This document shows positions 32,201 to 57,871 of a DNA stretch of 64,000 bases, piece by piece. The stretch comes from Amphiscolops sp. MND2022 (Eukaryota). Location of the stretch: NCBI GenBank assembly GCA_964187785.1, contig OZ076415.1, positions 15,252,001-15,316,000 of the forward strand, in the 5' to 3' direction. Position numbers and translations under genes: made by a program. The notes under the pieces are model-generated. The model did no database searches, had not been told where the DNA came from, and saw only the letters and a program-made list of their open reading frames with translations. Numbering within the stretch: position 1 is the first letter of the stretch; the number at the start of each line of letters is the position of its first letter.

Positions 32201-33994
32201 CCCACAGAACAACAACTATGGGAAGAGAAGGAAACACTACGTAAAAGAGCGAAAATGGAAACTCACAATGACCCAAAAAACGAAGTGTCGGAACTCCAAA
32301 ACTTCCATAAATCCACAGCAGGAACAATCGACTATAGAGAAGGACACTTCAAAGACAACGGAAAAAACTGTTTAGAACAAAACAACGACCCAGTCCTACG
32401 AAATCTCTGATACAAAATCGGAGGCGAATCCTATGATGAATCTGCACTCACCCAGGATTACCGATACAAACACTTTCTACAGAGTATAATGAGAATTGAA
32501 ATTAGACAAGATGTTCTAACAAGGAAATACTACAATGACACGGGTATGATCTCTCATTATCAAGTTCTCTTACCCAAACAACTCTTAGATGAATTCCTAC
32601 ATGCTCTCCATGGGCATAACGCAAACCACCCAGGAATCACAAAGATGATCCAAGAAGCAAGACAAAAATATTATTACCCATGTATTGCTAAATACATCCG
32701 AATTTGGGTCACCAAATGTCAAATGTGTATCCAAAACAAACGAATCAATAATGACCTTCTAAAACTGAACTACTCAATTGTCCTGAATGGGACTCAGGTC
32801 CTGAGGACATACTACAAATTGATATTCTTCCGAACCTTCCCCCAGGTGGAGGTTATGACAATATTATCACAGCAAGAGAAGTAGCCGCTGTAGTGAAAAT
32901 AGAACTCAAACACGCCACAACAAAACATGCTCAAACAATCGGACTGTTAGAACGTACACACGCATCAGTCAAAAGGCATCTTAAAGCAGCCACATGAGAC
33001 TTCAGAAACAACTGGCACAGGTTTCTACCTTTGGCGGTTTTAAACCACAACACAACGCACCATGCAACACTCGGATGCGAACCAACACGAGTCTTCCATG
33101 GACGATTCCCGCATAATATTTTGGTTTTTAAACTTGAATACAACCCAAATCCCCGCTACCAACCCCAAACTGAGGTAGCAGAAGAAGTCCAGCGACGTAT
33201 TGCATTACTTCACGACAAAACGAAGAAAAACATAATGCAATCGTACCTCGAATATAAAGCATATTATGATAGGAAAGCAAAAGCGGCACCTCTAACAACT
33301 GAGGACTACTGTTTTATCTAGAACCCGAAAGCACACACTCAAGCAACAAAAATACCTTCTCGAGAATTTCGATGGGTTGGTCCGTACAAGGTCGAAAAGG
33401 TCCTACTGAACAATAACTATATTGTTCGCAGACTTGGCACAAACAAAACCCAACGTTCTTCATCGTAATAGATTACGCAAATACATACCACAGGCCCCTC
33501 TCGCAGATACTTTTGTCAGAGAGACGGAATAGCAAAAGGAAGATACACTTATCTCGCAAGCTGACCTGTATGCCCACACTTGGAACACAAATTTTAGATC
33601 TATTCCATTTGAAACAACACTAGAAAGTTGTGACCAACAAGAGGACACGGTTGAATATGAACCTACATCTAAAACTTGATGTATACAGCACTCCCGCCCA
33701 CAATAATTTTGAAAACAGTGGGGGATCCCAGCAGAACAATCTGCTGCGAATAACGAAGAACCCCAGTTGATTGAAAAAACCCCTTCAGAAGACGAAATTC
33801 ATGAGCCTATACCAGAAACTTCAAGAAATCCAGAAAATTCCCAACATATCCCTTCCCAAATTTCCCCACAAACTCCCGAAAACAACCCAGAAATTGATGC
33901 ACAAGAAGTAGAAGAAATTGTTGTTACAAGAAGTGAAAAATACAATTTACGTCCAAACCCTAATCCTAACTACTCAGACTCATACAGATATTAA
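29226..33994 (+). pseudogene. pol: Element C pol (PR-RT-RH-IN), degenerate
   Basis: LFDTGALTSA; LRLLVDLRKINN; AFNFASRTFAYRRLAQGL; QYVDNI; HGHNANHPG..CQMC; C-terminal KYNLRPNPNPNYSDSYRY. Confidence 0.93.
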
Positions 33995-34345: not shown

Positions 34346-37300
34346 TCACGTTTTTCCCGTGGGTGGAAACGGAACTGCAGTAGGAAACCAGGGAAAAGAC
34401 AAAGTTGCAGTTGCCAAAGACGGAAACTCAACTCTTGTTTTTCCAGCCTGATCCTGGGATTTAGAACCGGTTCGGATGGGCCCCGGAGTTACAAACTTTG
34501 GCTTTGAACAGGAAGCAGCTTTTGACTCTGGCAATGAACTAGTAGGACTAGGAGTCTTCAGATTACAATCAATGGAAGTCCATGATCTCTCCTCATCAGT
34601 AACAGTGCAATTATAGCGAGCTTCAACACGATCGAGGAGTAATTGTCTACGTGAGAGACAGGAAGAGGTAACATGCCATACCGAAAAATCTTCGTCCTCC
34701 ACTAGAGTACTGCCTTTTCCCAACAAAGAAAAATGGGATCCACTGTCCTAGGGTTATTGAATAGACCCGACATATTTGGTACTCCAATTAGGGCAGATTG
34801 GGTACTGCGAACGCAAGAATGGAACTCATCATAATCAGAGGACAATTGGAGTGAGGATAGATTGAAAGAAGGAGGGATGTTGGAGACAACTAACAGACTA
34901 AGGCAACACAATTTGAAGACCGTGAATAAATTCTCACGGCTATGCAATTCGTAATACCCAGATAGGAAGTCTATCCAGGTACCATCATAGACTGGGCTGC
35001 AAGATCTGAATATTTCCACAAAGGAACGATACTAGCTCTTTAGCAAAGGTTTCGAAGTGGCAGAGATCCAGTGTTGCTGAATCAAGTAATCATACAACAA
35101 TTCGGCGTCATGACAGTAGTTAGTTTCTTCTCCGTGGCGGATAACTCTGTCGTCAAAAATAGATGACGCACGAACCAATTTTGACTTTCGAATCACATGC
35201 TTGAGGAGTAGGGCGCAAAGATTCTTCTGGAAGCAAATCACCTGCTTCACAAAATGCGTAGGTGTTGTAATTTCTCCTTCAGCAACCAAGGCAGCAAATT
35301 CCTTGTTTCGCAAAAACACAGTAGGACTCTTACGGGGCAAGTCAGGAGAAGAAAGGTCGATAGAAAGATATCTGTCCCAATCTGAGATGCCGCCAAGGTA
35401 GGAGTCCGGCAGAATACACTGTAACTGGCTGTACACGAAGACTGCAAAAGAATTGTACAAGCGAAAGTTGATAGAAGCAACTCCATTGAATGCTGACTCG
35501 TCTAAACATAAAAGAAATCAATCGAAGGAAAAGGAGGAAAATAACACAAAATACGGAAGAGAGGACTTACAATCCAACAACACATTCCTGACCAGAAACA
35601 ACTTGGCGGGATACGTTTGTCCCTATAGAAGGTCTCGTCAAGACTTCGTGACTGAAAAAATGATAAGGGGTTTTAGGAGAAAGAATTATACAAGCAGATA
35701 GAACATATGAATAACAAAGTCACCTCATTCATATGATATTTGAAAGCCTTGAGGCAATCAGCAAGACGAAGATGTGAGATGATTCGGGTCTAATTCCTGT
35801 ACAATTGCTCGAGAATCACTACCGACTCAGCAAAATTAAATTGAAGAGTGACAATGGCCTGAAACACAACAACTAGACTATAACAGCGTCAAAGCACAAT
35901 TAATAGATGCTAGGTGGATCAGGAATTATGATGCTGTAAGCGGTTTTCCGAACTCAGCATAAGAAGGCATGCAGGATACAGCATAAGCTCGGTGGATGAT
36001 GCAGATTCCAAATGAAAACAGCATCACGCAGAGAGTATTATGCAGAAATGAAGAAAAAACCTCATGATCATGCTGTGATGAACGGACGTAGTGTAGCGTA
36101 CTGTAAAGCATCATAACACTACATTAGAGGGAGTTCAGCTTAACGGAACGAAATTATGCGGTTTTGCAAAACAGACAGAATGACGGAACGATTTTATGCA
36201 GTTTCTAGTGAAAATCAGCATAAAGAACCATGGTATGTTCACAAGATAGTAGCATGACAAAGTGTCATATGCGGACTTCAGCGAGAAACAGCGATGCTAA
36301 CATGATCAGGAGGTATTTCAGAGGAAAACAGTATGATAAAAAGCCCCATGCGGTTTGCAACATGAAACAGCATTGAGGAATAATCTTATGACGTTTTGAG
36401 ATGAAGACATCATACGGAAGCAGAACTATGCGGTTTTAGAAGAAAAACAGCATATGTGGGTGGCTTGTTCAGATTCGGAAAAACAGCCTAATAGAAGAAC
36501 ATTATGCAGTTTTTAACAAACACTGTATACGGAAATACGAAAGAATCGGAACAAAAGCATGTAGAGTATGCGGAATGGCAGAATGAAATTGATACAAGAT
36601 AACGTGACAAATTATGATGCATTATGACGTTTTCTTAAGACAGTACAAAACAGAAGCAAGTGTAGATAACTTTTTCAGCTAACAAATTTCGGGATGAAAT
36701 GGAAAATACAAAGAAACCGACAAATTTGGTAAACCAACCTTACGTAACTCAGATTATTGTTGAGCCAGGCAGCTTCCAAAGCGGGTTTCAGCTTCATCAG
36801 TAAGAATTGAAGAATACTGTGATAGTCGAACCTATCCAGAATCTTGACTGTGGGCCCAGCTAGAACCTTGTATAGATCACAGTGACCAAATGTAGGAACG
36901 ACGCAAACTGAAGGGATCTGATTTATTTCAACAGTGAGAGTTTTGGCCGATTGCGCATCAAATCCAAAGAGAGAGTAGACTGGAGGTGGTTTACTCGGGA
37001 CAGAAAGATAAGAGCAAACTACTTGAAGAGCCTTTTTAGCGGACAATTGAGCGTCAGGAAATTCAGCAAGACAAAAGTAGTTGAAAACGTTGCCGGCCCA
37101 AAATGTGATGACGACACGAATGCAACCATTCAAGGTCTGTAACTGCAACGAACATTGCCCAGACTGACTGATAGAAGCAATGGAGTAAGACAGCAATCCG
37201 CGGAACATGTAGACCAAGATTCCCTGTTCAACAAAATAAGAACATTCAGGAATGAACAGAATTAGTATAGTAATTTCAAAAATTAAAGACACTTACGAAA

Positions 37301-38657
37301 ACGCGTTCCGGGTTCCAGTTGAACTGTGGTACCTTTGTGGTTTCTCGGACTTCCAAACTGAGGTTAGCCCAAAGTGAAGTCAGGACTTCTGATTCCCCAT
37401 GTTGAAGGCCAGTGATCAGGATACGGACTTGGGAGCAAATGACAGCAAATGGATCCAGGATGTCAGTGCGGGGTAATTCTTTTTGCCCTGGTAGTAAGTA
37501 ACATTCGCCAAGGACGTTTGCAATGGGGAAAGTTTATTCTGCTTTCTCACGGGCTTCGTCAACGAAGGTCCGACCAACTCCAGTTCGTCACGACCTTATA
37601 AAGGCAGTCCTGGGGTCTCCATTCTGATCCTATGCTCCCGTATCAAGTGCGCGTCAGTTCTATAATGAGACAAAATCTCTAGTGAACCTTTAGTCTTGAA
37701 AGACAATTCAGTGTGAAACACCCTACAGCGCCACTTGTGTGAGTCTCTGTCAGCATCGGCGGGGGCAGTCACGAAGAACTTGAAAACAGAGTGTTTTCGA
37801 TACATCTGGACGTTCAACTGAATGCGGGGGCGAGGTCGTTTCTGAGTCCCACTGCGGTCGTCTGAGGAAGCGGGCTGAGTCTTCTCCGCTTAACCCTGAT
37901 AGGATTTCTTCTGAGTTTCTTTCTGCACTGTGTGAAGAGTGAGGTACTATCGGAAGTTCCAAGGGTAACCCTTGCAGCCAACGAACCACTCGCTGTCCCA
38001 CGAGACTCAGGTTCAGGGTCGTTGACGGAAGGTCCCGTTTGTGGTTGGGGGAGAGTTTCCATCAATTTAGAATTGATTGCAGTCGTGGTCTCAGTGACCA
38101 TCGCTCTGATTCTCCTCTCTAATGCAAGTAGGTCTAGAATTGTAGCGTAACTACTGCTTTGCTGAGGAAGTTCATTAGTTACCTCATTGTTGACGACTGG
38201 TGTTTCCTTGCTCTCAACTGCGTCGCCAGATTGCCGCAAGTCAGTCAGGAAAACAGAGAAGGGAGAACCATGAGTAGTGTCTGCTGATCATTTAGGAGTA
38301 TTTTCGACACCTGAGGTCCCAATGATTTCAACAGTCTCTTGAAAATTGTCATCAGAAGCGGCAAATGTTTGAGCTTGATTGGATTTTTCTCCTGCTGGGT
38401 TTGAAGTGTCAACCTTCGCGAGGAGTAAGAAACTGGCACGTTCTATCGGAGAAGGGACTGTTTGGCTGATGGAGATCATGCTCCTATCGAAAGAATGTTT
38501 GATACCGTCTAAATCAGCTGTGGGCTCTATCCCTTCAGGTATTTCCGCGAAGCGTTCTGGCGTAGACTGGTCAAAACGTCTCTCAAAAGGGACAAGTAAC
38601 GCAAAATCAGAGGAAGAGGTTGGCTTGGAAGTGGAGCACGTGGACCAAGAGGGAGAC
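34346..38657 (-). pseudogene. Element C antisense intron-containing gene: zinc finger + hAT-transposase-like fold + hAT C-terminal-like region
   Basis: S/T/E-rich N-terminus; finger WRCRV(F)HTELSFKTKGSLEILSHYRTDAH; GT-AG introns at 37296-37224, 36743-35859, 35723-35652 and 35570-35502; C-terminal SKLVRASSIFDDRVI...WIDFLSGYYELHSRENLFTVFKLCCLSL. Several frameshifts and stops are present. Confidence 0.75.
35900..36660. repeat. Degenerate CAGCAT/TTATGC(G) minisatellite-like tract (inside the long intron)
   Basis: Dense recurrence of cagcat and attatgc/tatgcgg motifs. A similar texture occurs at 39300-39720 and in the element C LTRs (~24150-24700, ~41450-41950). Confidence 0.5.
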
Positions 38658-42772: not shown

Positions 42773-42854
42773 TGGTGAAAGTCAATTGGCCACTTCCGGT
42801 GAAAAATTTCAAACTTTTAGACTAGTTCCGAAAAGGAAGCATAGAATCTCTCCC

Positions 42855-44517
42855 TGTCGCAAGCTGCCGCCTGCGACGGGAATTATTATCAAATTCCCGA
42901 GGAATGTGTGGAATCTAACCCTCAACCCGGAGTACTACCAATTTAGAAGTTTAATATTAAAACGCTTTGAAATTTCGCTTAAATTTCCTTTTGGGTTGTT
43001 ATTTTATATTTTACCGTGACGGACCTATGGTCCACACGGCTTCATCAGAAATTACGATTATATTTATCGGGGCTACATTTTACTGATTAAAATAAGTCCT
43101 GTGCCTGTTCTATTGAATGAATGAAATTGTGGTATTGCAGTACAAATGTAAAATAACAAGGAAGATGAGTCTGCTGTTAATTACAACTAGGAAACGAGTT
43201 CAAATGAACTCTTGTTGACGTCCGGTGTACGCACCGGCCTTATATTATTGTCCAATCACAGTGCTATACAATATGCTTGCTGTAGCTGCGCGGACCGAAA
43301 GTCTGCCACGGTGCTATTTACTGTCACTCAGGCAGCTCAAGTACGCTTGTTGTAGCTACTACATAGAAGTATAATATGAATGGTGTGATGTAGTTATTTA
43401 TACTCTGAGTCCACTAGAGAAATAATAATGTATGAATTGCCCTGTATAACATTCAAAAGCCATGTAAAGTTGATGCCCGCATGTATTTGTTCGTATTTAG
43501 ACATGTATGTTTCAGACTTATATAATACTTACGGTCTATCTACCAACTACTATAATTCGCTTTGATGCTATATTTAGTAGTGCAAATAGTGACGAAATAT
43601 GACGTCATGAAACCTAAAATAACTTGGGAGCTATTTTTAGTAGCATGACAACCATGAATTTGTTTGTCATGCAGGAAGGACTATATATAGCGAGACCCAA
43701 GAGACCGGAGGGACTTCTTTCTGAAAACTCCACCAGAAGACATAACGTAACTGAACCGTTTCTTTGTGTGATTGCAATTTTACCTTCAATATCATTTATA
43801 CGTTTTCCATCTGTTGTCAATATATACAATCAGTATGTTTCGTTAATACATTGTTGTTGTGTCTATTTTCTTCGATGCCTTCAACACGAAAGCAAAAGGC
43901 TAAAGAGAGACGCTCCAGGCAATTAGACATGCTGTCCGACGTAGAAAACGTCGATATAATGCTAGGAAGTTACCCTAGAGGTGATGAAGAAAATATTGTT
44001 AGCGAAGATGGAGTGAATTTGGACTCAGGGTCTAGTAGACCACAACAAAGTTCAAACCTTTTGGGAGAAGATTTAAGGTCTTTACTTAACACCAATAGTA
44101 GAGAAAATAGTGAAATTGCGACTGAGACCACTAAGTTGATAAATGAAGAAATTTCCAACCAATTGTCTAAAAAGCTCAATGAGATCAAAACTAGCCTGAA
44201 TTCTCAAATTCAGGATGCAATTACGGCCGCAATAACGGGTACAGTGCTTCCTTCTATCCAAAATACACTAGAAATGCAGGGGAGACCCGATTTCACTATG
44301 GTGGACCGAAGGTCCGAAGGGCTACATCCCAGCCCAAGACCGACTGATTTCACCATAAAGGACCGAAGGTCCAGTGGGCTACAACGGAACACCGAAGTAG
44401 GAAATTCGCAGAAAACGTGGGAAAATCGTCCCAAAACGTGCTATACTCAGAAATATAATAAACTTAGGTCTAGGGAGAGTTCAGCAGACTCAATTTATAG
44501 TGACCAAGATCACGACA
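42855..44517 (+). repeat. Element D 5' LTR (1663 bp)
   Basis: TGTCGCAAGC...GATCACGACA. It differs from the 3' LTR by scattered SNPs (roughly 1-2% by eye) and one 29-bp net indel. Confidence 0.96.
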
Positions 44518-44529
44518 TGGTGACAGGAG
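44518..44529 (+). promoter_or_regulatory. PBS TGGTGACAGGAG of element D
   Basis: Immediately after the LTR CA. It is absent after the 3' LTR, where the TSD follows instead. Confidence 0.9.
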
Positions 44530-45631
44530 CCAACCCTACCCCACATATGGTTCCTGAGTTTCTCACTGGACGTCCCATGCAATCCTGTGAGCACCTGCAA
44601 CGGCAAAATTCAAACAACAACGAGTCTCAGGATACCATTCCCCAAGGCCCTGAGACTACAGCACCAAATACTTCTTCCGACCCCATTAACCGTCTAGCTG
44701 AAGTATTAGTTGGCATGAACAACCGTCCATCAGCACAAACGCTGATGGTACGCCCAGTCAGCACAACCACACTGACGTTCGACGGCAAATCTGAGAAATT
44801 CGAACTTTTTGAAGATCTTTTTCACACAATGATAAAAATGCAACCAGATATGACTGAAACAATGAAAATAAACCATTTTCATTCATTGTTACGCAAGAAC
44901 GCGTTACAAATTTTCCGTAAAATCAATACGGCAAACAGGCAGACTCTGGAGGACATCCTAGCAGTATTCCGCCGAAAATACGTTAAACCTGAGTCCCAGG
45001 CGACAGCCAAACATAAATGGCACAGATTGGTGTTTGATCCAAACACCATGAAACTGCCAGACTTCCTTGAGGAATTAAATCAATGAACTGAAAAAGCGTT
45101 TGGCGAGAACGCCCAGGCCATGATCGATAGTCTCCTCTATGCCAAGTTACCGCCAAAATTGAAACGCTCCGTCAATATGGCTAGACTGGAAAACGCGACC
45201 TACGAGGAAATTGTTACCCATTTGGAACGAGAGCTTGAACTCAATGGACTTGAGGAGGGGGATGACATTCCGGTACCAACAATGTCCACTGCCCCTACAG
45301 CAACACGACCGGGAACTGGCCTTCTTTCCTCTGGCATTGATCCAATTATTACTTGCAACTGCTGCAAGAAACCTGGACATGTCAAAGACGATTGCCGCAA
45401 ACTCAAAAGAAAGGAGGAACAACGCCGCAATGAAGGGCAGGATACTAAGAAAGAATATCCCAAATGTCCAACTTGCGACAAAACGAACCACCCGGCGGAA
45501 AGATGTTGGAAAGGCGCTGGAGCCCACCTCAAGCCCAAAAACCTTAAACTGGATGACACCACGGTCACCGATAAGTCCACCAGCCAAGACGAAGCGAAAA
45601 ATAAACAAACCACGTCCATTTTAAAGAATCC

Positions 45632-45638
45632 AAAAAAC
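45632..45638 (+). promoter_or_regulatory. Candidate -1 ribosomal frameshift heptamer A AAA AAC at the gag-pol junction
   Basis: An X XXY YYZ heptamer directly before the gag stop, with pol in the -1 frame. Element C has T TTA AAC at the same position (26660-26666). Confidence 0.7.
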
Positions 45639-45643
45639 TAGAT

Positions 45644-48600
45644 TTGCCACGACTCCAGATAAATGAAACACTCCGTGTCCGACAATACATAAGATCTGAC
45701 CCTTCAAACGTCTATTACACTGAATACTATACAGGTCTTAAAGAAACTTCATCAGCTGACTGGCAGCAGCAGATGAAAACTCCACCTAATTTCCTTCCCA
45801 CTTTGGACCCTATGTCCAACAGACTACAAACGGATACTTCGACGATCCGACTTATACCTCTTGTCGACGATTATAACCCATATTACCCTGACCCTGACTA
45901 TGGTTTTGACCCTTACTGGGACGCTAATTGCTACGATCAACATCATCTAAACTTCTACCGAAATTTTAATAAACCGAATTCGAATATAGAACCAGACTCC
46001 TTTGAAATTGACCGAGCCTTAAATATGGTCCTTGCGAAAGCCCGAGCGGACCCATGGCAACACGACGAAGCACCAACACACCAAATGCCTCACACTCAGC
46101 CTCACAATGAATCTCACAGTACGGGACCACAGGTCTCTTTGACTACAGCAGTTGCCGCACGCTTCGTGAACACACTAGTCACCAGAACCGGCGAACCAGA
46201 TTATGTGCCACTGACAACCAATCTTGGCCTCAAATACAAACGACGAATGCTCTATTTTCCGATGGATTTTGGCGAACTAACTTTAGATGGCCTTGTAGAC
46301 ACGGGTGCTCTATCTAGTGCAATCCCAGAAGCTGATCTACGTAAAATCCGATTATTAGCCCCTCAGTCTATTGTCAAAGAGGGCCCAGCACCCAACTTCC
46401 AAATTATGGTCGCTAATGGACAGCTGGAGACTCCAAAGTGCACTGTCGAACTGAAATTTGAAGTCGGCGACATAGAATTTCACGAAATATTCATCGTCAT
46501 GGAAAAACTTACCAGTCCATTGATTGGTCTTTCGTTCCTTCAAAGGAACAATACCATCCTAGACATGAGACAAGGTGTCTTAAATTTCCCTTTCTTTTCA
46601 ATGCAACTGAAAACTGCTGATCACAAATATACTAATGTCATGGAACCCATTTGCATTAGCGAGGATGTTATCATCCCACCTAATGGCCGACAATCGGTCC
46701 TTATGACTTCACAACTGTACGAGAACACTACAGTTACTGGGATCCTTCAACCAAGCAACAATCTTACAGATGAAGGCGATATTGCATTCTGCGCTGCTCT
46801 ACTCACCCTGACCAATGGTCAGGTATCAGTTCATCTGAACAATTTTACTGATAGTCCGTACATCCTCAAGAGGGGTACACAGGTGGCTAATTTCACAGTC
46901 CTCACGCCAGAACAGATGAAATATGTTAAGCCCATTGACCCGGTGACCACATGGCACCTCCTACAAGATAACCCCGAAAACGCTGCTCATTATGCAAGTA
47001 GCTTGATCAAATCTACCAAACCTGAGGACCTCAAGGAAAACTACTGGTTTCCAACACCAGAAGACCCTGGGGACCCTCAATATCACACGCCGATTCAGAA
47101 ACGGATCCTGTCAGAACTTATCAACCTTCAGGAATTAGAAAAACTTAATCCTCAGGATGACCCCGAGTCACGACGCCAATTTTTGTCCAACTTTGATTGG
47201 ACCGACTCCATGCTACAGCCAGCCGAAATAGCTCGCATAGAAGATTTACTTGTCGAATTCCACGACATATTCGCTAGACACCGATTCGACATCGGCATGA
47301 ATGAAGACTTCAAGGTCAAATTGACCCCGAAAGATGACTCTCCGGCCTACAGTCAGAGTTTACCAACCCCAATTAACCTCAAGGAAGACATCCTTGTGGA
47401 ACTAGCTTTATTACATCGCTATGGGATCATTACAACACTCCCATTTTCCAAGTACGCAAGCCCCATTTTCGCACAAAAGAAACCCAATGGCAAACTGCGA
47501 CTTTTAGTCGACTTACGCAAAATAAACAACTTGATATCAGATGACTACATCAATAATAACCATCCAGTAAGTACCCTTACAGATGCCGCCCAACACATGG
47601 CCGGGAAAAAGCTATTCTGTAAATTGGACTGTTCGCAAGCTTACCATTGCCTACAGATGGCGGACCAGAGGTCCATCGAAATGCTTGCTTTCAACTTCGC
47701 CAGCAGAACTTTCGCATACAGACGTCTGGCACAAGGTCTTAGTAGAGCCCTATCGGCCTTTTCAAGCTTTATGCGAGAATATTTGGACGAAGTCATTAAA
47801 GCAGACCAATGTGCCCAATACGTCGATGATATTGGCATCGCTGCCAACGATGCCGAACAACTCATCAACAACCTGAGGGCCACTTTCCAATGCATACAAC
47901 AGGCTGGTCTCAAACTTACTATGCACAAATGCCATTTTGGGGCAACGGAAATCGACTTTCTGGGACGTACCATCACTCCTGCTGGAGTGAAGCCGCAGAG
48001 ACCTCGGGTCCAAAATTTCCTAGAAAATACGAAATTCCCAAAATCCAAGAAAGCACTACAGCGTTACTTGGGATTTTTGAATTATTATCGGAACTACATT
48101 CCAAGACTATCAGAAAAACTAACGCCGTTTTTCAAACTGCTCACTAAAGATGAAAAAGTCCTGGTGACACCGGACCTATTGGAAAAATTTACCGAAATAA
48201 ACAAGGCTCTTGATCGATGTTGCGAACTGGCACTCAAACAACCCTTACCGAACAAGCAAATAGCCCTCATTACTGACGCCAGCTTTTCGGCCGCAGGGTA
48301 CGCAGTTCTCATCGAAGACGATCCACTCGAGAAGTACACTTCCACGAGGAAAGCTTTCGCACCAGTAGCTTATGGATCCAAGACTTTTAGTCCTACCCAA
48401 TTGAAAATGTCCATCTATGCCAAGGAATTCTTAGCAATTTTCTTTGCCTTCAAAGAATTTGGACATATCTTTTGGGGAACCCCAAAACCGGTAATTATAC
48501 TCACAGACAACAAGTCCGTCACACGCTTTTTTCAAACTAAAATTATTCCGCCGACATTATGGAACGCTTGTGATTATGTGATCCAGTTTAACTTCACAAT

Positions 48601-50742
48601 AGCACATATCCCAGGCAAAAACAACACAGCGGCTGATTATCTGTCACGTCTAGAAATCTCTCCAAAAGAGAAATTAATCCTCAGAATCAGAGAAAACATC
48701 CCCACAACGCCAATTGAACTACACGTCCAATCGGCCGGAGTTTCGGAAGAGGAACAAATCTTCTATACAGAGGACGATGACGAGACTGAAGAACAACTTT
48801 TACAGCGTAAAAAAGACGCCAGGGACCACCCGACAAACCAATTACCTGATATTTTATTCGAAAAGTTTACCACACACAAAAGTGATTATCACCGACTCTC
48901 CCCACTCCAAAAACTATCCTACACGAACTCTATAGCAGTAGAGCAGAATAACGACGTCATTTTACAACAATTGCGCCTAAAAATACTGAAAGAGAGCTAC
49001 TCTGAGACCATTCTCCTGCAAGATACTCGTTACCAACATTACTGTCGCCAAATGGACCGACTGTCCGTAGTAGACGAAATTATTACTAGACAGTATTTTG
49101 ACGAAACCGGAGCTGTCAAATACAATCAAGTGCTTTTACCTAAACATCTGGTCGATGAATTACTCGAATCCCTACACGGCAAAGCCAATAAACACCCGGG
49201 AATATCCAAGATGCTCATCGAAATTCTCCAAAAATATTACTATCCTGGCATCGCAAAAATTGTCAAAAAAAGGGTTCAAGGCTGCGAAATTTGCATTAAA
49301 GATAAAAGAGTTCCAAGCTCATCCATAACTCCCGAATTACTAACTTGCCTGAATGGGATTTAGGTCCAGAAGATGCAATGCAAATTGATTTGTTACCGAA
49401 CCTGCCCCCCAGTGGAGGTTATGAAAACATCATAACTGCAATGGATGTGCTCTCAAGATATCTTTTTGCATATCCAGTTATCGACGCTTCGGCCACAAAC
49501 ACAGCAAAGGTTATTATAGACATAATGACCAAACATACTTACTTGCCCACTACCTTGATCACGGACAAAGGCACGGCTTTTACATCCAGACTAGTCGCCG
49601 AAGTGGCTCAAATTCTCGGAATTCGCATTAAATGCGCAACTACAAAACACCCGCAAACAATTGGCAAACTAGAACGTACTCATGCCAGTCTCAAAACAAA
49701 CCTCAAGATGGCCTCAGGGGACTACAGGCGACAGTGGCATAAACATTTGCCTTTAGCCGTATTGAACTACAATACGACTTACCACGCCACCCTGGGTTGC
49801 GAACCATCCAGAATTTTTCACGGACGAATCCCATATAATATTTTGGATCACAAATTGGGCCTTAACCCTAACCCGAAGGTCCTACCGACTACAGATTTTG
49901 CTGACGAATTCCAGCGCCGCACACAGCTACTACTAGACTCCACAAAGAAAAACATCATGCAATCCTATTTAAAGTACAAAGAATATTACGACCGGAAAGC
50001 CAAAGCGGCTCCTTTGAAACAGAACGACTACTGTTTTATATTGCAACCTATCGCTGACCACCAAGGATCGAAAATTCCTTTCCGTGAATACAGATGGACG
50101 GGACCCTACATTGTAGAAAAGGTCTTACCAAACGAAAACTACATAGTTCGGAAATTGAGTTCTAACAAAACGCAAATTCTTCACCGTATTAGACTTCGTA
50201 AATATGAACTGAACCTTGTCCCACAAGACAACAGACCGGAAGGCAATTTGCAACCGGATGATGAAATAATCATTCCACAGGACGACCTCTATGTTATTAC
50301 TTGGGAAACCAATTTTGGAGAATTTCCCGATTCAACTGAAGAAAACACATTTCCTACGTATCGAGACGCTCGCGATGCTTCTACTGATTACGCCAAGGAC
50401 GCCAGAGCGCCGGACGAAATTTCCACCGACATGGACCTTACGTCCACCGGGCCTCAAGAAAATGACACGAGAGTGCCAGACGGCATTTCAAATGACGGGG
50501 ACCTTAGGTCTACCGGGCCACATGAACAGGATGACTTGGCAACGCTTGGAAAAACTCCTTCAGAGCGCACAAATGATTGGAATGACGGTCAAGAATCGTC
50601 AGGAGTAAGCGATACTATCGTGCCCGAAGTATTAGATGATGAAAACGATGATATGATTGTAGAAAATGAAAGTCCTAGGGGAGGAAAATATAACCTTCGT
50701 CCTAACCCCACCCCCAACTTTACTGATGAATACAGATACTAG
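45644..50742 (+). CDS. pol: Element D pol polyprotein PR-RT-RNaseH-IN (single frameshift at ~49345)
   Basis: LVDTGALSS; QYVDDIG; TDASFSAAG..SIYAKEFLAIFFAF; HGKANKHPG..CEIC; QIDLL/TDKGTAF/LERTHASLK; WTGPYIVEK; RGGKYNLRPNPTPNFTDEYRY. The domain order is Ty3/gypsy. Confidence 0.96.
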
Positions 50743-50941
50743 TCAGACACTTAAATTAAAGCCCCGTCTTTGACAAATAAATACATGCATCTTTTCAGGA
50801 CTTGACTGACTGCTACTCTAGATCGGTAATAGAATAAATAATAATAAACACAAAAACCAAAAGAAGACATCAGAAGATTTTACAACATGGAAGATGTTTA
50901 TTTCACAATTGTACAATTTGTACAATTAAAACTTGTCACAA

Positions 50942-53900
50942 TTAAATCACCTTCTCAGCCTTCTGTTTACACCCGACAGCAAGTCTGGCGCCCAGTTTAG
51001 AACGACTGATGAAATCTTCTACGGATAAGGCCCTAGCGTCTGGAAAGGAGAGTTTCATGATGGCTTGGAAATCATTCTCGGCGGGGAGGCTGTTGGTCCT
51101 TATACATCTGCGGCCAAGCTTTAGGAGGAACCGACAAAACTCCTTGTACACATGGAACCCACGATCTCTTCTGGATTTCAAGTTCAACGAGAAACTGGAT
51201 GTATCTGAAACAAGAACCTTGAAGACCCGTACCTAAGGCCCTAGATGTAAAATTAATGAATAAAACTCACAATCTCTAATAAGTCGGTTGAACAACTCCA
51301 ATCTGCTGAGGAACAAGTCGTCATACACTATCGACCATTCCAAGTTTTGAGGCTAAAACGGACGACAATTAAGATCAAGCGGACCTACGGTACCGATGGC
51401 CAGACAAAGATGCGTGATTTACCTGTTTGCGAACTCCTTGATTTTCTTGGGTGGGAGCGTGTTTGCGTAGGTAAGTGATCACCTTGGACCAGTTGTCAAT
51501 GAGTTCCTGGCAGAGCGATGGTAATCCACTAATGTCAAGTTGACTCGTTCGGACAGCCTGTAGGGAAAGAAATAGGTTTAGACACTAGTGGGTCCGATCG
51601 GAGTTGTAGCAAGAAGTGAAAAATCCCAATCAAGTTCTAGACATCCGCCCAAGCAGATGACTAGGTATCTCAAGACTGAGAAGAAGTCGATTTTGCCAAA
51701 GACACTACTGCACTTCTTATGCATGAGCTGTGGCAAGTTGAGTTCCTCAAATCTAGGCGGACTTTGGACACTGAACTCACTGTATGGGCTCTGATCGATC
51801 AATTGCATTGAACGTGCGCTGCAGCCAGTTGAGCAAATGAGGTTGGGCGTAGTTGACAATACTCCCATCAAGTACGAGATAAGGCACATCTCGGCACTAG
51901 TCTGGCCTTGCAGACGACTAGTCCGCTTGAGGAAGACCCTACACAGCTCGTCTGATCTCCATAATCGAATGAAGATGAGAAGAAAGACCCCATCTGTTGC
52001 GAATTCCACTGCGTACTCGCCGTTCAAGTTCACGTGGGTAGCTATGTCAGTCACAAGTTCAAGGAACATGTGGTGGAACAGTAACTAAAATCAGACAAGA
52101 CAAGGTTTACTAACGTCTTGGGACCTTCAACTTACGAAGCTAAAATTCGGAAGACAATAGTTATGGGAACTTACACTAAGCCGTTCTTTCCCCCAGTTAA
52201 AATCGGTAAATAAAGCTTGATGGTTGAATATCACTCCGACGTCACTCCAGAACGACTTCAAGACCTCTAGGTCACCGTTGGAAGGGAGGAATTTAGCCAA
52301 CACTGACAATTGCACTCGTGCTCTACTGTTAGACGAAGAAGACATGTGGTCCTGACCAGCCATATATTCATCATAAAACGGAAGTTTTTGTCCGATTTCT
52401 ACTAATTGGGCGTTCTTGAAGAAAGGTAGCTCCAATTCCAATTGATAGGGAGTTAACAACTTCCCGTCCCTTCCGCGTACTTGGTGGACCTTTGATCGGG
52501 TGACAGGATCAATGGTATATAGGTACTCATACCTCCACCTCTGGTCTTTTCGGAGGTGTTTTTCAGTTGAGTGGTGTCGTAAAATTTCTCGGGCCCCTTT
52601 TCCGTAGATCGAGATATTGGCTTTGCAGATCTGACAATAGAACTTATAGGGGTTCCACTGTGGGTCCACCGGGCCAGAGACGAACGTTCGGGTCCATTCC
52701 ATACCTTGGAAGTAGGCCTCTTTCATTATTTTACACGATCGAGTAACTTTACGCCGTGTACCTGTACCTCGGAATGAAGAAGCTGATTTCTTCTGCTTGC
52801 TTCGAGCACGCTTAGACTGGTCGTATAGGGCTTCAGCCTTCAGTGATGCAAGGGTTTGCCCTCCTGGGCTGTCCGCGCTGAATGCCTCGGTGTTGGACTG
52901 GAGGTCTTGCCGGCTACAGGAAGCTCTCTCTCCGGCCCCGGGGGGAACGTTTATTCTGGCTATGTCAAGGTCCTCATACGAGTACCCGATGCTGGAAAAA
53001 TCATCATCACTGCGAATGGCACCGCTAGCGTCACTTAGACGTCCTGATGATCTACTGCTTGCTCTATGAGGGGATCGGCTAACTGACCTACCAGGGGAAC
53101 GAGGCTGTCTGGGTCCAGTTCCAAGATGCAGTTCGCTAGTCTTTTGGATCAGCTTCTCCATTACCCCACACGAGGCCCTCACAGCTTCATCGGCCACGAC
53201 CTTGAGGACACTACTAATCTGGTCTTCTGTGAAGGCAACAGTTGGGTGACCTTTTGGAAAGTCGAACCTTTCAGCATTACTGAAGAACTCCTTGATAAAG
53301 GCTCTACTACTAGGTCCTAGAGTGGGACTACGAGAAGAGCTGGGGAGTCCTACGGGTACAAAAGCACTATCAGAGTCATCTGTGTGAAGAGGAGGAGTTT
53401 TGGTCCTAAGGTTCAAAGCTTGTGCAATGGTAGACCCTGCTGGGTTGGTAGTAGATTCACGGTCAGTGTCAAATCCAAACTCAGAACTACTCAAGGCCTT
53501 ATGAACAGGAGGCATCTCTTGGTCCATCTCATCCGAAGAATGAACCGGGGGAACTAATGTGGATGAAGAAGTGGTTTTGGGAAGCGATTCCAGCTGAAGA
53601 GGTGCATCAGTTGTGACAACACTCCCTATTCTAGGTCTCTTATTGGCCTGATGCCCCAACTCGGATCCAGAGTCATCTTCAGTTTGCGTCTGGATTCCCA
53701 AATGGATCTCATTCGCGGGACCCGGAGTCACAGTTTCTCCACTAGATGAAGAATTTGCTGCTGGAGTAACGGCAACAGCCTCACTCTCACTTTCTTTCGC
53801 AAATGCTCTTTGGTCTTCAGTTGATGGAAGCTTACTTGTTCCCGTTTCCATGGAATTTACCCTTCGGGCAAAATAGGCCTGCACGCTCTCCTCAGAGCTG

Positions 53901-54292
53901 CTATTATCAGAAGCGAGGAGGTTTATCAAAGAAGGAGAATAATCAGGAGACTGAGACATGAGGGTGGTGGTGACCAGTTTAGCTACAGATGAAGTTGAAG
54001 TCCTCCCTGAGAGATTATTTTCGGACGAACTCTGAGATGGAATCCCTTCAATAATCTCGATGGCACTCGGTAGACGATTCAGGACAACCTCTTGTGTTGG
54101 CATGGCAGCGTTTGACGCAGCTTCTGATCCATTGGGACCGTGGGTCTTTTCAGCTACATTTGGATTATTGCTTGTAGACGTTTCTTCTGTATTACTAGTC
54201 CCTGGCAACACTAGTTTTGGTTGGCCGTTTGCTTCTTTTCCTAAACGGAAAGAAATAAATTCACGCGGCTCACTTCCTGCAAAAACATCCAT
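50942..54292 (-). CDS. Element D antisense spliced gene (~1000 aa): disordered N-terminus, C2H2/BED-like finger, inactive hAT-transposase-like core
   Basis: Exon 54292-52175 (706 codons, FYCQICKANISIYGKGAREILRHHSTEKH); intron 52174-52085 (GTAAGT..TTTTAG); exon from 52084; acceptor at 51558; exon 51557-51423; intron 51422-51353; exon 51352-51271; intron 51270-51205 (GTGAGT..TTTCAG); last exon to TAA at 50942. All resolved junctions keep frame. One donor is unresolved. Confidence 0.8.
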
Positions 54293-55432
54293 CTTGCCGC
54301 TTTGTCTAACTTCCGGAAGTGAAGTTTGTTAAAACTCAACCAAGGTTGAAAACGTTTCACGATGGAGGAAGTAAAATTAGTCGAACCTAAACCCTGATCA
54401 AGTTTAGCATAGACAAATGAAAAGAACCAACCTGACGTTACATCCATGACGGAGAACGGAATTTGTTAGCTTCAAATGTTGCGTCAAAGGGGACAATTAG
54501 CGGCTGAGGAAATATCTCTCCTATTGGCAACAACGAAGAGAGTTGTGCATTTCCCTTCCAATTGATGTGGCTGCTGAGACTACGGGTCCAATAATGAGCT
54601 GTATAGAATAGGGAAGTAGCGGAATGCTTAATCCAAATACGAATTGTAGGGCTTTAAAGAGTGAGAAATGTCGAGAACTCCAAAACAGACACAGAGACTT
54701 TAACAATGATATTCTAATAAATAATTACCAGTCCGACTTTATTAAACTTGGAGTCTAATTACATTAAAGGGCATAAAACCCATGAGTGGTTAATTACCAC
54801 TATTTGAATGGACGTCGTGGCCTATTATTTAGTTATTTCACCTACAATTACATATTACTTAACTTCACCTACAATTATCTAATTATTATCTTAATACCAT
54901 GGATTACATCTGCCAGTGAAATTCATGCCATTATTTCATGATAAGATTCATTTACTTCGAAGGCTAGTTTTAGTTTAGAGGTAAAGCCATCTTTTCAAAT
55001 TTCATCAATTTGCTATTCTTTTACCAGCGACACCCCATTGGTTGCTTCAGCTGATGTGGCCGCGCGGACCGAAGGTCTTTGATGGTGAATTTATTTACCG
55101 ACAGTTAACTCGAGTTAACACTTACTACACCTATTCACTACTATCAAGTGTTTATGCAAACAACTAGTAAGCCCCTCAAGAACCAATTAACATGAAATTT
55201 ACCTTAGTTACCAATAAGAGAAATAGAGTAAGGTTACAAATATGGAATGTTTGGCAAAACTTAGGAAAGATCAGAAAAGATGTTCCCGCCGGGAAACTCC
55301 CGCAAAAAGGGAAACCGGGGCCCTGAGTCTCTCAAAGGAAATCATTCATTCTGATTTGAAAAGCGCCAAACAGTTGATTGTCAAAACTTCAAAATTGCCA
55401 AGAAAATATTTCTACAACGATTTCTATCCAAA

Positions 55433-56251
55433 ATGGAAATGCAATTCGCTTTCGACGAGATGACAACCTCCCTTGTAAGTCCTGCTTACTTCTCGTCTGA
55501 GGTGGAAGAAATGGACGTCGACCTACTGTCAGTGTCAGTAGAAGCGACCGGACGTCACTCTGACGACAGTGACATTGAAGTTATTGCATGTTATCGTCAC
55601 GTTCCGGTGACACAACCTAATATGATCGCGCCCCGTGGGATGACGACAGACCTCTCGAGCTGTGCTGATGATGGATTTCCTGATTTCCCGTGGGAAGACT
55701 TAGAGGATCTATGGCCAGAGGAATTCCAATCCACAGAGGTTGAGCTTGGAACGGGACCGAATGCGTTAGGACAAGCAAACAATTGCCCTATCAGTCAGTG
55801 CTCCAACTTAGTCCCGTTGGTTGACACGCCTCTGTCACCTCCACTAAGTGAACAAGGCCCTAGCCATGCACGTTATGATTATTCAGGTCAGTACAATGCG
55901 AATTCCAATGCTCCCCTGAACGCACACATCCAAGGGATCAGTGTGCGGTTTGGATCACATTGTGGCGGACCGAATGCAGCAGTTTATGGCGACTGTATTG
56001 TCTGTGGACGCTCCTACGAGCAAATTCGTGAGACGGCACTTCTGGCATACCTCGAGTCAACTTCAACACGGGACGAATCGTATCAGGAACGGCAAAGACG
56101 CAGGAATGCTTACTTAGAAGGTATGAACCAAGGGACAGTACTTTTAGTCCCTAGGGGAGTGTCGCAAGCTGCCGCCTGCGACGGGAATTATTATCAAATT
56201 CCCGAGGAATGTGTGGAATCTAACCCTCAACCCGGAGTACTACCAATTTAG
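55433..56251 (+). CDS. Element D small sense accessory ORF (272 aa, acidic, CxxC) overlapping the PPT and 92 bp of U3
   Basis: Open 272-aa frame containing GDCIVCGRSYEQI...RRRNAYLEG. A homologous motif sits at the same position in element C. Confidence 0.7.
   Translation: MEMQFAFDEMTTSLVSPAYFSSEVEEMDVDLLSVSVEATGRHSDDSDIEVIACYRHVPVTQPNMIAPRGMTTDLSSCADDGFPDFPWEDLEDLWPEEFQSTEVELGTGPNALGQANNCPISQCSNLVPLVDTPLSPPLSEQGPSHARYDYSGQYNANSNAPLNAHIQGISVRFGSHCGGPNAAVYGDCIVCGRSYEQIRETALLAYLESTSTRDESYQERQRRRNAYLEGMNQGTVLLVPRGVSQAAACDGNYYQIPEECVESNPQPGVLPI
56153..56159 (+). promoter_or_regulatory. Polypurine tract of element D
   Basis: AGGGGAG immediately before the TG of the 3' LTR. Confidence 0.8.
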
Positions 56252-57851
56252 AAGTTTAATATTAAAGCGCTTTGAAATTTCGCTTAATTTTCCTTTAGTG
56301 TTGTTATTTTATATTTTACCGTGACGGACCTATGGTCCACACGGCTTCATCAGAAATTACGATTATATTTATCGGGGCTACATTTTACTGATTAAAATAA
56401 GTCCTGTGCCTGTTCTATTGAATGAATGAAATTGTGGTATTGCAGTACAAATGTAAAATAACAAGGACGATGAGTCTGCTGTTAATTACAACTAGGAAAC
56501 GAGTTCAAATGAACTCTTGTTGACGTCCGGTGTACGCACCGGCCTTATATTATTGTCCAATCACAGTGCTATACAATATGCTTGCTGTAGCTGCGCGGAC
56601 CGAAAGTCTGCCACGGTGCTATTTACTGTCACTCAGGCAGCTCAAGTACGCTTGTTGTAGCTACGCGTACCGTCGGTCCACAAAAGTGACGGCCATTTAG
56701 AAGTATAATATGAATGGTGTGATGTAGTTATTTATACTCTGAGTCCACTAGAGAAATAATAATGTATGAATTGCCCTTTATAACATTCAAAAGCCATGTA
56801 AAGTTGATGCCCGCATGTATTTGTTCGTATTTAGACATGTATGTTTCAGACTTATATAATACATACGGTCTATCTACCAACTACTATAATTCGCTTTGAT
56901 GCTATATTTAGTAGTGCAAATAGTGACGAAATATGACGTCATGAAACCTAAAATAACTTGGGAGCTATTTTTAGTAGCATGACAACCATAAATTTGTTTG
57001 TCATGCAGGAAGGACTATATATAGCAAGACCCAAGAGACCGGAGGGACTTCTTTCTGAAAACTCCACCAGAAGATATAACGTAACTGAACCGTTTTTTTG
57101 TGTGATTGCAATTTTACCTTCAATATCATTTATACGTTTTCCATCTGTTGTCAATATATACAATCAATCTGTTTCGTTAATACATTGTTGTTGTGTCTAT
57201 TTTCTTCGATGCCTTCAACACGAAAGCAAAAGGCTAAAGAGAGACGCTCCAGGCAATTAGACATGCTGTCCGACGTAGAAAACGTCGATATAATGCTAGG
57301 AAGTTACCCTAGAGGTGATGAAGAAAATATTGTTAGCGAAGATGGAGTGAATTTGGACTCAGGGTCTAGTAGACCACAACAAAGTTCAATCCTTTTGGGA
57401 GAAGATTTTAGGTCTTTACTTAACACCAATAGTAGAGAAAATAGTGAAATTGCGACTGAGACCACTAGGTTGATAAATGAAGAAATTTCCAACCAATTGT
57501 CTAAAAAGCTCAATGAGATCAAAACTAGCCTGAATTCTCAAATTCAGGATGCAATTACGACCGCAATAACGGGTACAGTGCTTCCTTCTATCCAAAATAC
57601 ACTAGAAATGCAGGGGAGACCCGATTTCACTATGGTGGACCGAAGGTCCGAAGGGCTACATCCCAGCCCAAGACCGACTGATTTCACCATAAAGGACCGA
57701 AGGTCCAGTGGGCTACAACGGAACACCGAAGTAGGAAATTCGCAGAAAACGTGGGAAAATCGTCCCAAAACGTGCTATACTCAGAAATATAATAAACTTA
57801 GGTCTAGGGAGAGTTCAGCAGACTCAATTTATAGTGACCAAGATCACGACA
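56160..57851 (+). repeat. Element D 3' LTR (1692 bp)
   Basis: Direct repeat of 42855-44517, followed by the TSD CTCCC. Confidence 0.96.
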
Positions 57852-57871
57852 CTCCCATTATCTCCCATTAA
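57209..57871 (+). CDS. LTR-encoded copy of the Gag N-terminal 214 aa, terminating in flanking DNA
   Basis: The same ATG and frame as 43875 within the 3' LTR, ending ...SDQDHD-TPIISH*. Confidence 0.5.
   Translation: MPSTRKQKAKERRSRQLDMLSDVENVDIMLGSYPRGDEENIVSEDGVNLDSGSSRPQQSSILLGEDFRSLLNTNSRENSEIATETTRLINEEISNQLSKKLNEIKTSLNSQIQDAITTAITGTVLPSIQNTLEMQGRPDFTMVDRRSEGLHPSPRPTDFTIKDRRSSGLQRNTEVGNSQKTWENRPKTCYTQKYNKLRSRESSADSIYSDQDHDTPIISH

Follow-up and report, generated by a model that had tools for sequence, protein, structure and literature searches.

A Ty3/gypsy LTR retrotransposon of Amphiscolops sp. carries an intron-containing antisense accessory gene with a hAT-like product

The window, a stretch of 64,000 nucleotides of Amphiscolops sp. 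MND2022, contains an LTR retrotransposon, here called element D (Table 1). Its LTRs are direct repeats with TG...CA ends and were ∼99% identical in self-BLAST, except for one 29-nt indel. The perfect TSD claimed in an earlier sequence-only reading was confirmed, as CTCCC is present on either flank. The 5' LTR is followed by TGGTGACAGGAGCC (begins TGGTGAC...) in the putative PBS position. The gag ATG at 43875 is located inside the 5' LTR, which contains 214 gag codons. Pfam domains were found in the order gag-asp_proteas, RVT_1, RT_RNaseH, Integrase_H2C2 and rve, corresponding to PR-RT-RNase H-IN. By its LTRs, its TSD and this order of pol domains, element D is a Ty3/gypsy element.

Two further genes lie between pol and the 3' LTR. 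The first is an antisense gene on the minus strand, convergent with pol, with its start ATG at 54292. Upon predicted splicing, exons 3-5 join into a single open frame. The position of intron 1 is shared with relatives at ∼36% identity, and intron 3 is confined to the lineage group formed by element D of the window, L084 and L088. The stretch flanking the downstream polyadenylation signal is 97% identical in another copy (C4). The second gene, ORF3, is divergent from the antisense gene and read in the sense direction. It is conserved in other copies and in L032/L033 (dN/dS 0.09-0.12) and had no Pfam or Atlas match. The spacer between the two genes is partly conserved among copies (query 3476-3739) and, from its position, is presumed to be the internal promoter region of the antisense gene.

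Table 1. Features of element D and its accessory genes in the window (positions are those of the window).
Feature	Position	Strand	Basis or remark
Element D, Ty3/gypsy LTR retrotransposon, ∼15 kb	42855-57851	gag-pol on +	
TSD CTCCC, perfect, 5 bp	left 42850-42854, right 57852-57856		read directly
5' LTR, 1663 bp, termini TGTCG...CGACA	42855-44517	+	self-BLAST, ends read directly
gag-pol, four ORFs	43875-45086, 45120-45641, 45644-49363, 49345-50742	+	ORF list
AATAAA polyadenylation signal, downstream of antisense gene	50897-50902	-	minus-strand pattern search
Exon 5, truncated in window copy	50942-51204	-	
Intron 4, 66 nt, GT-AG	51205-51270	-	position also kept in distant lineages
Exon 4, 82 nt	51271-51352	-	
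Intron 3, 70 nt, GT-AG	51353-51422	-	
Exon 3, 135 nt	51423-51557	-	
Intron 2 remnant, acceptor retained, donor gone	51558-51619	-	alignment with 14 other copies
Exon 2, 3' end deleted	51620-52084	-	alignment, AF2 secondary structure, fold matches
Intron 1, 90 nt, GT-AG, with in-frame stop	52085-52174	-	
Exon 1, 706 codons	52175-54292	-	ORF list
Spacer between antisense gene and divergent ORF3	54293-55432		position
ORF3, 272 aa, crosses polypurine tract into 3' LTR	55433-56251	+	ORF list
Polypurine tract AGGGGAG, precedes 3' LTR	56153-56159	+	read directly
3' LTR, 1692 bp	56160-57851	+	self-BLAST and direct reading
29-nt insertion in 3' LTR relative to 5' LTR	56665-56697		

An antisense gene with GT-AG introns of 66-90 nt inside element D had been proposed from the window alone, and the reading frames together with 14 aligned copies bore this out. 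The proposed size of ∼1000 aa with three introns had to be revised, as intact relatives have 5 exons, four introns and about 1,300 codons. The window copy is a defective member of the family that carries two deletions. A 67-nt deletion, seen as gaps of 54 and 13 nt, took away the donor of intron 2 together with ∼26 nt at the end of exon 2. In the 14 other copies these 67 nt are present and include the exon end and a donor with the conserved sequence AAG|GTACGT. Thus, the donor for the acceptor at 51558, whose absence had been noticed before, was indeed deleted. In addition, ∼800 nt are missing just 3' of exon 5 (8 nt in the window compared to 808 nt in the C4 copy), where other copies continue the frame. 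Thereby ∼270 C-terminal codons were lost.

The antisense gene is present at the same place and in the same orientation in the 14 other copies, at 70-87% nucleotide identity. The layout, with the gene convergent with integrase, was shared by all further lineages inspected (11 of 11). One of these, L090, derives from the assembly of another species and matches the window's genome at 67-69% nucleotide identity, only in the integrase. The gene was therefore found in every related lineage examined, and not as the one-off insertion that had been considered as a possible alternative. All 14 aligned copies had conserved GT-AG sites at identical positions. Where protein identity drops to about 30%, splice sites and intron positions are still kept, with four introns in the gene and three in some lineages. 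The introns themselves are merely 57-60% identical between copies. A dN/dS analysis across genomic copies, which the sequence-only reading had suggested, revealed strong purifying selection, with values of 0.02-0.05 in conserved exon parts and 0.18 in the N-terminal half (dS saturated). With splice sites conserved in 14 copies and introns this divergent next to exons this constrained, the gene structure is far beyond chance.

In 4 of 13 fully analysed copies the spliced frame reached at least 1,275 codons without a stop, and 97 of 120 scored last exons, drawn from 7,839 first-look candidates, were free of stops. A second lineage group comprised 6,723 candidates. Divergence of the antisense protein tracks that of integrase (Mantel r=0.92, p=4e-4), and the antisense protein evolves 3-4 times faster. 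In four DNA runs the contigs were unspliced and intron-precise joints were not found, so there was no sign of processed copies. The database relatives of the protein are all unnamed ENA gene calls. When 1.84 billion representatives were searched with a profile that retained 248 positions, mostly from exon 1, 648 matches were obtained, and the best 150 of these 648 were all family members. Thousands of related elements conserve the antisense gene under strong selection, which makes it a genuine accessory gene of gypsy-type elements, and apparently one not described before. The earlier proposal that it was co-opted as a retroelement accessory factor is likewise supported by this selection and by the co-divergence with integrase.

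Exon 1 encodes an acidic, S/T/P-rich N-terminal region followed by a C2H2 finger (aa 553-579) and a helical region. The N-terminal half has a pI of 5.1 and contains 32% S/T/P, and basic clusters are located at aa 218, 494 and 513. The finger had been described as C-x2-C-x15-H-x4/5-H; its C2H2 type stands, and its spacing is C553-x2-C556-x16-H573-x5-H579. AF2 modelling predicted a beta-beta-alpha shape for the finger. For exon 2, the AF2 model and fold matches indicated an RNase H-like beta1-beta2-beta3-alpha1-beta4 core (YAVEFATDG...ICSTGCS), so that the core expected of the hAT superfamily appears to be present. The order of the parts, i.e. finger, helices, RNase H core and all-alpha region, is colinear with hAT. 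The x-G-[CS]-[ST] and [FY]-[SA]-[LIV] motifs are found at what we take to be the positions of hAT-type motifs. Models were mediocre (pLDDT 55 and 63.5), and in the first of them misplacement of exon-2 fragments by MAFFT led to a core modelled from about 6 sequences. Fold and language-model searches with both protein halves retrieved Hermes, DUF4371/ZBED5/ZNF862 and the hAT dimerisation domain, weakly but consistently, and AFDB matches included BED-type proteins. The structural match to hAT/RNase H-fold proteins anticipated by the sequence-only reading was thus recovered, with hAT proteins as the best fold or feature matches of both halves at low TM-scores (0.2-0.47). On the basis of these models and searches, the antisense protein probably descends from a hAT transposase.

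No hAT family of Pfam was detected in any exon or in any of the 141 and 28 alignment members, even at E values of 5-10. The finger family zf-C2H2_ZN292 appeared in 62 members below threshold, and zf-BED at E=4.1 only. A profile search of PDB sequences gave no match. A PF14291 search found no match in the window's genome and none in the controls, and is thus uninformative. In an exhaustive VIA/rigid-body comparison, the N-terminal model matched a generic RNase H-like/ASKHA fold with Hermes not above the others, and the C-terminal model had no significant match in the PDB by exhaustive VIA search. The missing hAT signal at the sequence level and the outcome of the VIA searches would fit a real accessory gene of other descent, namely a protein taken from a host gene or from a different transposase superfamily, which combines a C2H2 finger and a generic RNase H-like domain and whose hAT matches reflect a common fold plus a finger. 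Such an origin seems unlikely, since four different searches with two independently modelled halves all led to hAT-derived families and never to another transposase superfamily, and since the part order follows hAT and the motifs lie where hAT-type motifs would be expected.

The acidic N-terminal half and the basic clusters adjoining the finger resemble the architecture of a regulator. Dead transposase derivatives are often DNA-binding repressors. The antisense protein could in the same way repress its own element and limit copy number or transcription, similar to truncated or dead transposases or to Ty1 p22, and its architecture suits a repressor as well as an activator. However, the carrier families are extremely abundant and young, with 19 last-exon copies at 98-100% identity. 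Moreover, very strong purifying selection along the element lineages is more easily explained by a function that propagation requires. A repressor is accordingly an improbable reading of the gene.

In order to judge catalytic capacity, the positions of the catalytic residues were compared in 72 aligned sequences. The second catalytic Asp corresponds to the residue that precedes the invariant G behind beta4, and this residue was T, S, F or R in 72 of 72. At the beta1 position of the first catalytic Asp, A, E, Q or R was found, with Ala in the window's lineage. The claim that both positions are non-acidic consequently holds for the second in all lineages; for the first it holds in the window's lineage and fails in some others, which have E. 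The candidate for a third catalytic residue is variable between lineages. No conserved DDE triad was found across the 72 sequences, and for this reason the protein is not expected to cut DNA; judging from these residues, catalysis was presumably lost. Most lineages keep a Glu two residues upstream in beta1 (YxxE), and the window's lineage group has a D-E pair after the conserved LSCLCL motif. Both could serve a still-active nuclease or transposase with non-canonical residues, which would give the element a second DNA-level activity. We regard this as very unlikely, because the post-beta4 position is never acidic and the beta1 and C-terminal candidates vary between lineages. Furthermore, a search for a TIR pair with an 8-bp TSD around the gene, which the sequence-only reading had named as signs of a DNA transposon, yielded only inverted repeats at the level expected by chance, and in no case did their 8-bp flanks match.

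From the layout, an antisense transcript would fully complement the genomic RNA over about 4 kb. It is conceivable that this RNA alone matters, through dsRNA or small-RNA regulation, and that the reading frame is incidental. This is highly improbable, as dN/dS lies at 0.02-0.05 (dS saturated), many copies keep an open frame through 5 exons and protein motifs are conserved at ∼30% identity. A single nested hAT DNA transposon insertion, in which the gene would not be part of the retroelement and which is suggested by the hAT-like appearance alone, was rejected on account of a position, orientation and intron structure that are fixed across all lineages examined and thousands of copies, the co-divergence with integrase and the lack of a TIR pair with an 8-bp TSD.

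We therefore favour the reading that the antisense gene encodes a dead, hAT-derived nuclear DNA-binding accessory protein. Element D belongs to a large gypsy clade in which the interval from pol to the 3' LTR contains two conserved accessory genes. An internal promoter would drive transcription of the antisense gene, in the direction opposite to the genomic RNA. Its introns, being inverted in the genomic RNA, would never be spliced out of it and hence would survive retrotransposition. The ∼1,300-aa product is predicted to consist of an acidic disordered N-terminal half with NLS-like basic clusters, a BED-like C2H2 finger and a hAT-colinear body of helical region, RNase H-like core and all-alpha C-terminal part. 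We infer a nuclear, sequence-specific DNA-binding and oligomerising factor that may act in trans on the element's own DNA. Most likely it would control the transcription that starts at the LTR or at the internal promoter, or else tether the integration complex, and it appears to be needed for propagation of the lineage. More tentatively, a large gypsy clade that is at present very successful may have domesticated a dead hAT transposase as an essential trans-acting factor, either a promoter activator or an integration tether. The fast evolution of this factor would then stem from DNA recognition that differs between lineages, or from an arms race against silencing by the host.

Little is understood of the accessory genes that LTR retrotransposons carry, and antisense ones have been described mainly in plants, with functions and origins unknown. 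The gene in element D has a traceable origin, probably a hAT-like transposase, and is under clear selection. It offers thousands of natural variants for comparative analysis, and its conserved introns are able to persist only in antisense orientation. The antisense gene family would also explain thousands of "orphan" multi-exon gene models inside repeats. If the proposed reading is true, this would be the first retrotransposon that co-opted a DNA-transposon protein, and a natural system in which to follow how a retroelement keeps, gains or loses spliceosomal introns over long times. Should the protein bind the DNA of its own element, it would show that proteins of DNA transposons can be domesticated by retroelements as they are by host genomes, and the family would be a tractable model for the rise of complex retroelement regulation of the Tat, Tax or HBZ type.

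The closest parallel in layout is the antisense aORF-3R of plant Ty3/gypsy elements, known from Retand (TRP28/PF04195), Grande (gene23), RIRE2 and PvRetro13, and from the fungal Boty (PMC7264820, PMC11963269). It is present in most copies of a lineage, has its own promoter as shown for Grande, and is predicted to be a nuclear DNA-binding protein of unknown function (PMC7264820, PMC11963269). The gene in element D likewise lies between pol and the 3' LTR, runs antisense to gag-pol and is present in most copies of the lineage. In contrast, it encodes a different protein, very long (∼1,300 aa) and hAT-like, in a host that is not plant-like, and Transposase_28 (PF04195, TRP28) was not found in it at Pfam E values up to 10. 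A further accessory ORF, on the sense strand, accompanies it. It also contains four conserved spliceosomal introns, whereas the main text of PMC7264820 and PMC11963269 makes no mention of introns. The literature search found plant, fungal and retroviral antisense genes and, for gypsy elements, no antisense gene that is hAT-like or contains introns, in agreement with the earlier statement that no description of this chimera was known.

Among retroviral genes, the spliced HBZ of HTLV-1 (deltaretroviruses) likewise lies near the 3' end of its element, in antisense to the genomic RNA, and encodes a regulatory protein. HBZ is a small bZIP protein expressed from the 3' LTR, while the gene described here is large, transposase-like and has a putative internal promoter upstream of the 3' LTR. 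Hermes and the hAT or domesticated hAT proteins ZBED1/DREF, ZBED5, ZBED6, ZNF862, FAM200 and DAYSLEEPER, which provided the best fold or feature matches, are built from a BED-like C2H2 finger, helices, an RNase H-like core and an all-alpha C-terminus, an order of parts that the antisense protein appears to share. Many domesticated hAT proteins have lost catalytic residues too. The antisense protein differs from this group by the lack of a sequence-profile match to hAT Pfam families and by its added long disordered N-terminal half. In addition, the co-opting "host" would here be a retrotransposon with thousands of copies and not a cellular genome. Elements of one class carrying a protein of another are known from Ginger, DNA transposons with a gypsy-type integrase, and from Teratorn, a piggyBac-herpesvirus fusion. 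In element D the direction would be reversed, with a retroelement carrying the apparently non-catalytic derivative of a DNA transposase.

Element D is a 15.0-kb Ty3/gypsy element, as follows from its LTRs, its target-site duplication (TSD) and the order of its pol domains. Self-comparison of the window revealed direct repeats that are ~99% identical except for one 29-nt indel, the sole large difference between the two LTRs. The perfect TSD of the sequence-only reading was borne out by the pentamers on either side. The plus strand between the LTRs encodes gag and a pol whose domains follow the gypsy order (protease, RT, RNase H, integrase). The start codon of gag falls within the 5' LTR, so the 3' LTR contains a second set of 214 gag codons, and the gag frame runs on through the presumed PBS, TGGTGACAGGAGCC. 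Between protease and RT there is a weak, sub-threshold resemblance to dUTPase (PF00692, E = 0.004). The sense-strand accessory frame ORF3 (272 aa) crosses the PPT into the 3' LTR. ORF3 is kept in other copies, with ~33% identity in distant elements (L032, L033), is always divergent from the antisense gene, has a dN/dS of 0.09-0.12 and gave no match in Pfam or the Atlas.

Features of element D and of neighbouring gypsy elements (window coordinates)
Feature	Position	Strand	Remark
5' LTR, element D	42855-44517		starts TGTCG, ends CGACA (read directly)
3' LTR, element D	56160-57851		same termini
29-nt insertion	56665-56697		in 3' LTR
TSD	either side of LTRs		CTCCC, perfect
TGGTGAC...	directly after 5' LTR
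gag start, 5' LTR and presumed PBS	43875-44531	+	ATG at 43875
gag codons in 3' LTR	57098-57871		ORF
pol ORF	45644-49363	+	dUTPase match at aa 336-420
ORF3	55433-56251	+
Purine tract	just before 3' LTR		AGGGGAG
Antisense gene, start ATG	54292	-	opens 706-codon exon 1
Intron 1	52174-52085	-	90 nt; GTAAGT donor, TTTTAG acceptor; in-frame stop inside; then exon 2
Downstream exons	51557-51423, 51352-51271, 51204-50942	-	GT-AG introns of 70 and 66 nt between
Intron 3	51353-51422	-
Antisense-gene homologues, other elements	36675-37292, 37617-37775	-
Antisense-gene homologue, other element	13752-14216	+
pol, other elements	29666-32791	+
pol, other elements	20503-16446	-
Element B LTR pair	10334-12467 / 21557-23702		2.1 kb, 91% identity
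Tandem duplication	24418-26967 / 26974-29523		2,550 bp, 99.7% identity

The intron-containing antisense gene was confirmed, with corrections. Its three downstream exons join into a single open frame, and the two introns between them preserve frame as proposed. The finger reads C553-x2-C556-x16-H573-x5-H579, one residue longer than the x15 spacing given before. The window copy is damaged by two deletions. One of them had been suspected from the missing donor for the acceptor at 51558; indeed, all 14 other genomic copies in the alignment carry 67 extra nt at the exon 2/exon 3 junction, which comprise the final ~26 nt of exon 2 and the donor AAG/GTACGT, itself conserved. In the second lesion ~808 nt at the gene's 3' end are replaced by 8 nt, compared with a copy on another chromosome, and the last exon extends ~270 codons further in other copies. 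With the longer last exon and the restored donor, the intact gene therefore has five exons, four introns and ~1,300 codons; the sequence-only reading was right about an intron-containing gene, but its ~1000 aa and three introns fall short of the intact size. The stop codon of the window copy is followed 40 nt later by an AATAAA, ahead of the pol end. The gene and the divergent ORF3 are 1.1 kb apart, and this spacer would be an obvious place for a bidirectional promoter.

When the window's own 1.07-Gb genome was searched with the region of element D between pol and 3' LTR, many copies were found at 66-88% identity. The eight splice-site dinucleotide positions are conserved across 14 aligned copies (single exceptions in degenerate copies). 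Of the 13 copies analysed in full, 4, belonging to two subfamilies, have a stop-free spliced frame of 1,275 codons or more. The proposed comparison of genomic copies gave a strong purifying signal: between these two subfamilies, with dS saturated, dN/dS is 0.18 for the N-terminal half and 0.02-0.05 for everything from the finger onwards; intron identity is no more than 57-60%. Searched as protein, the last exon returned 7,839 first-look candidates (97 of 120 scored were stop-free), and the last exon of a distant lineage 6,723 further ones, almost all open. At least 19 last-exon copies (L021 and relatives), spread over many chromosomes, are 98-100% identical at the protein level, which points to a very recent burst of this subfamily. 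The window itself is a nest of gypsy elements and also contains a tandem duplication. Two others, B and C, bear diverged homologues of the antisense gene, both with the exon-2 core and converging on pol; element C also retains the finger.

Database relatives of the gene are unnamed ORF calls from ENA assemblies. The contigs of eleven relatives (27-50% protein identity to the window lineage) were inspected; ten come from an assembly with elements nearly identical to those of the window's genome (up to 97% protein identity) and one from a second assembly. The order was the same in all eleven, with the ORF3 homologue divergent from the gene and the gene converging on the gypsy integrase end. The second-assembly locus matches the window's genome only at 67-69% nucleotide identity, within integrase, so the element type also occurs in another species. 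Across lineages the exons are bounded at identical residues, and introns 1, 2 and 4, all with canonical GT-AG ends, occur in every one. In some database ORFs intron 1 is read through in frame, an independent marker of its position. Intron 3 was seen only in the group of the window lineage, L084 and L088; exons 3 and 4 are fused in the other lineages compared (L082, L083, L085), a case of intron gain or loss within a retroelement lineage. Pairwise divergence of the gene follows that of integrase: the Mantel correlation is r = 0.92 with exon 2 and 0.88 with the finger region (p = 4e-4), and the gene changes three to four times as fast. It has therefore been passed on together with pol for a long time. 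The common layout and the tracking of integrase rule out a one-off nested insertion, and no TIR pair with an 8-bp TSD was found around the gene.

Pfam assigned the protein to no hAT family and reported C2H2 fingers below threshold only (zf-C2H2_ZN292 in 62 of 141 members; zf-BED, E = 4.1), and a profile search of PDB sequences returned nothing. Two natural contiguous pieces were folded: finger-to-exon-2, from a relative reading through intron 1, and the last exon. The first model (pLDDT 55, partly owing to misalignment of exon-2 fragments in the MSA) has a finger of beta-beta-alpha shape and, as its core, beta1-beta2-beta3-alpha1-beta4. Its top Foldseek match in the PDB was Hermes transposase (E 2e-3 to 1e-2). 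Among AlphaFold DB clusters most informatively named matches were hAT-derived (HAT C-terminal dimerisation, BED-type, DUF4371, ZMYM1-like, DUF659, SPIN-DOC finger, TTF-type; E 8e-7 to 3e-4), and the Atlas shape search gave ZNF862-like and ZBED1/5/8-like proteins. Language-model features lead to the same clan (scores 0.79-0.84, a lead only). The last-exon model (residues 15-233) is all-alpha, with pLDDT mostly 70-93 and two lower 10-residue blocks. It had no PDB match; its best Atlas rows were Dimer_Tnp_hAT and FAM200-ZBED5_RNase-like (TM 0.42-0.47), and its AlphaFold DB matches include two HAT C-terminal dimerisation proteins (E 0.12-0.13). The hAT resemblance suggested earlier was found with both halves by fold and features, but not by Pfam or PDB sequence. 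Since both halves independently point to the superfamily in the right order, these models make hAT descent quite probable, not proven.

To compare the catalytic positions, 72 exon-2 sequences covering all lineages were aligned locally. After beta4 these read x-G-[CS]-[ST], where hAT proteins have D-G-A-S; none has an acidic residue at x, which is T, S, F or R. In mid-beta1 the window lineage has Ala and distant lineages have Glu; elements C and B have Gln or Arg there. In the last exon, the window group has D-E-P-R-F-S after an invariant LSCLCL, reminiscent of the hAT motif S-E-R-x-F-S; conservation of the acidic residue does not extend to other lineages. With a non-acidic position after beta4 and variable beta1 and last-exon positions, the canonical DDE site is absent. 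Loss of both catalytic Asp residues, as read from one copy, held after beta4 in all 72 sequences and for the beta1 Ala of the window lineage, but not for the Glu of distant lineages. A conserved Glu two residues earlier in beta1 leaves a small doubt about lost activity.

The introns are inverted in the genomic RNA and therefore persist; their conservation is evidence that the gene always travelled in antisense. In the protein, a fast-evolving N-terminal half, acidic and rich in S/T/P (pI 5.1), is joined by basic NLS-like clusters, a single finger and the body of a dead transposase. ZBED-type transcription factors are built in this way, which favours a nuclear DNA-binding factor on the element's own DNA. 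The predicted factor would regulate a promoter there or, failing that, tether integration, a role we infer and favour. The main rival of this role is a copy-number repressor. The interpretation as a co-opted, probably hAT-derived accessory protein is supported.

The sequence-only reading knew of no description of such a chimera, and likewise, within the full-text literature that was searched, no gypsy element turned up whose antisense gene was hAT-like or had several introns. [quoted passage not shown] The antisense gene of element D adds to this known class of antisense accessory genes of retroelements and, like the spliced antisense genes of deltaretroviruses, is predicted to be spliced.
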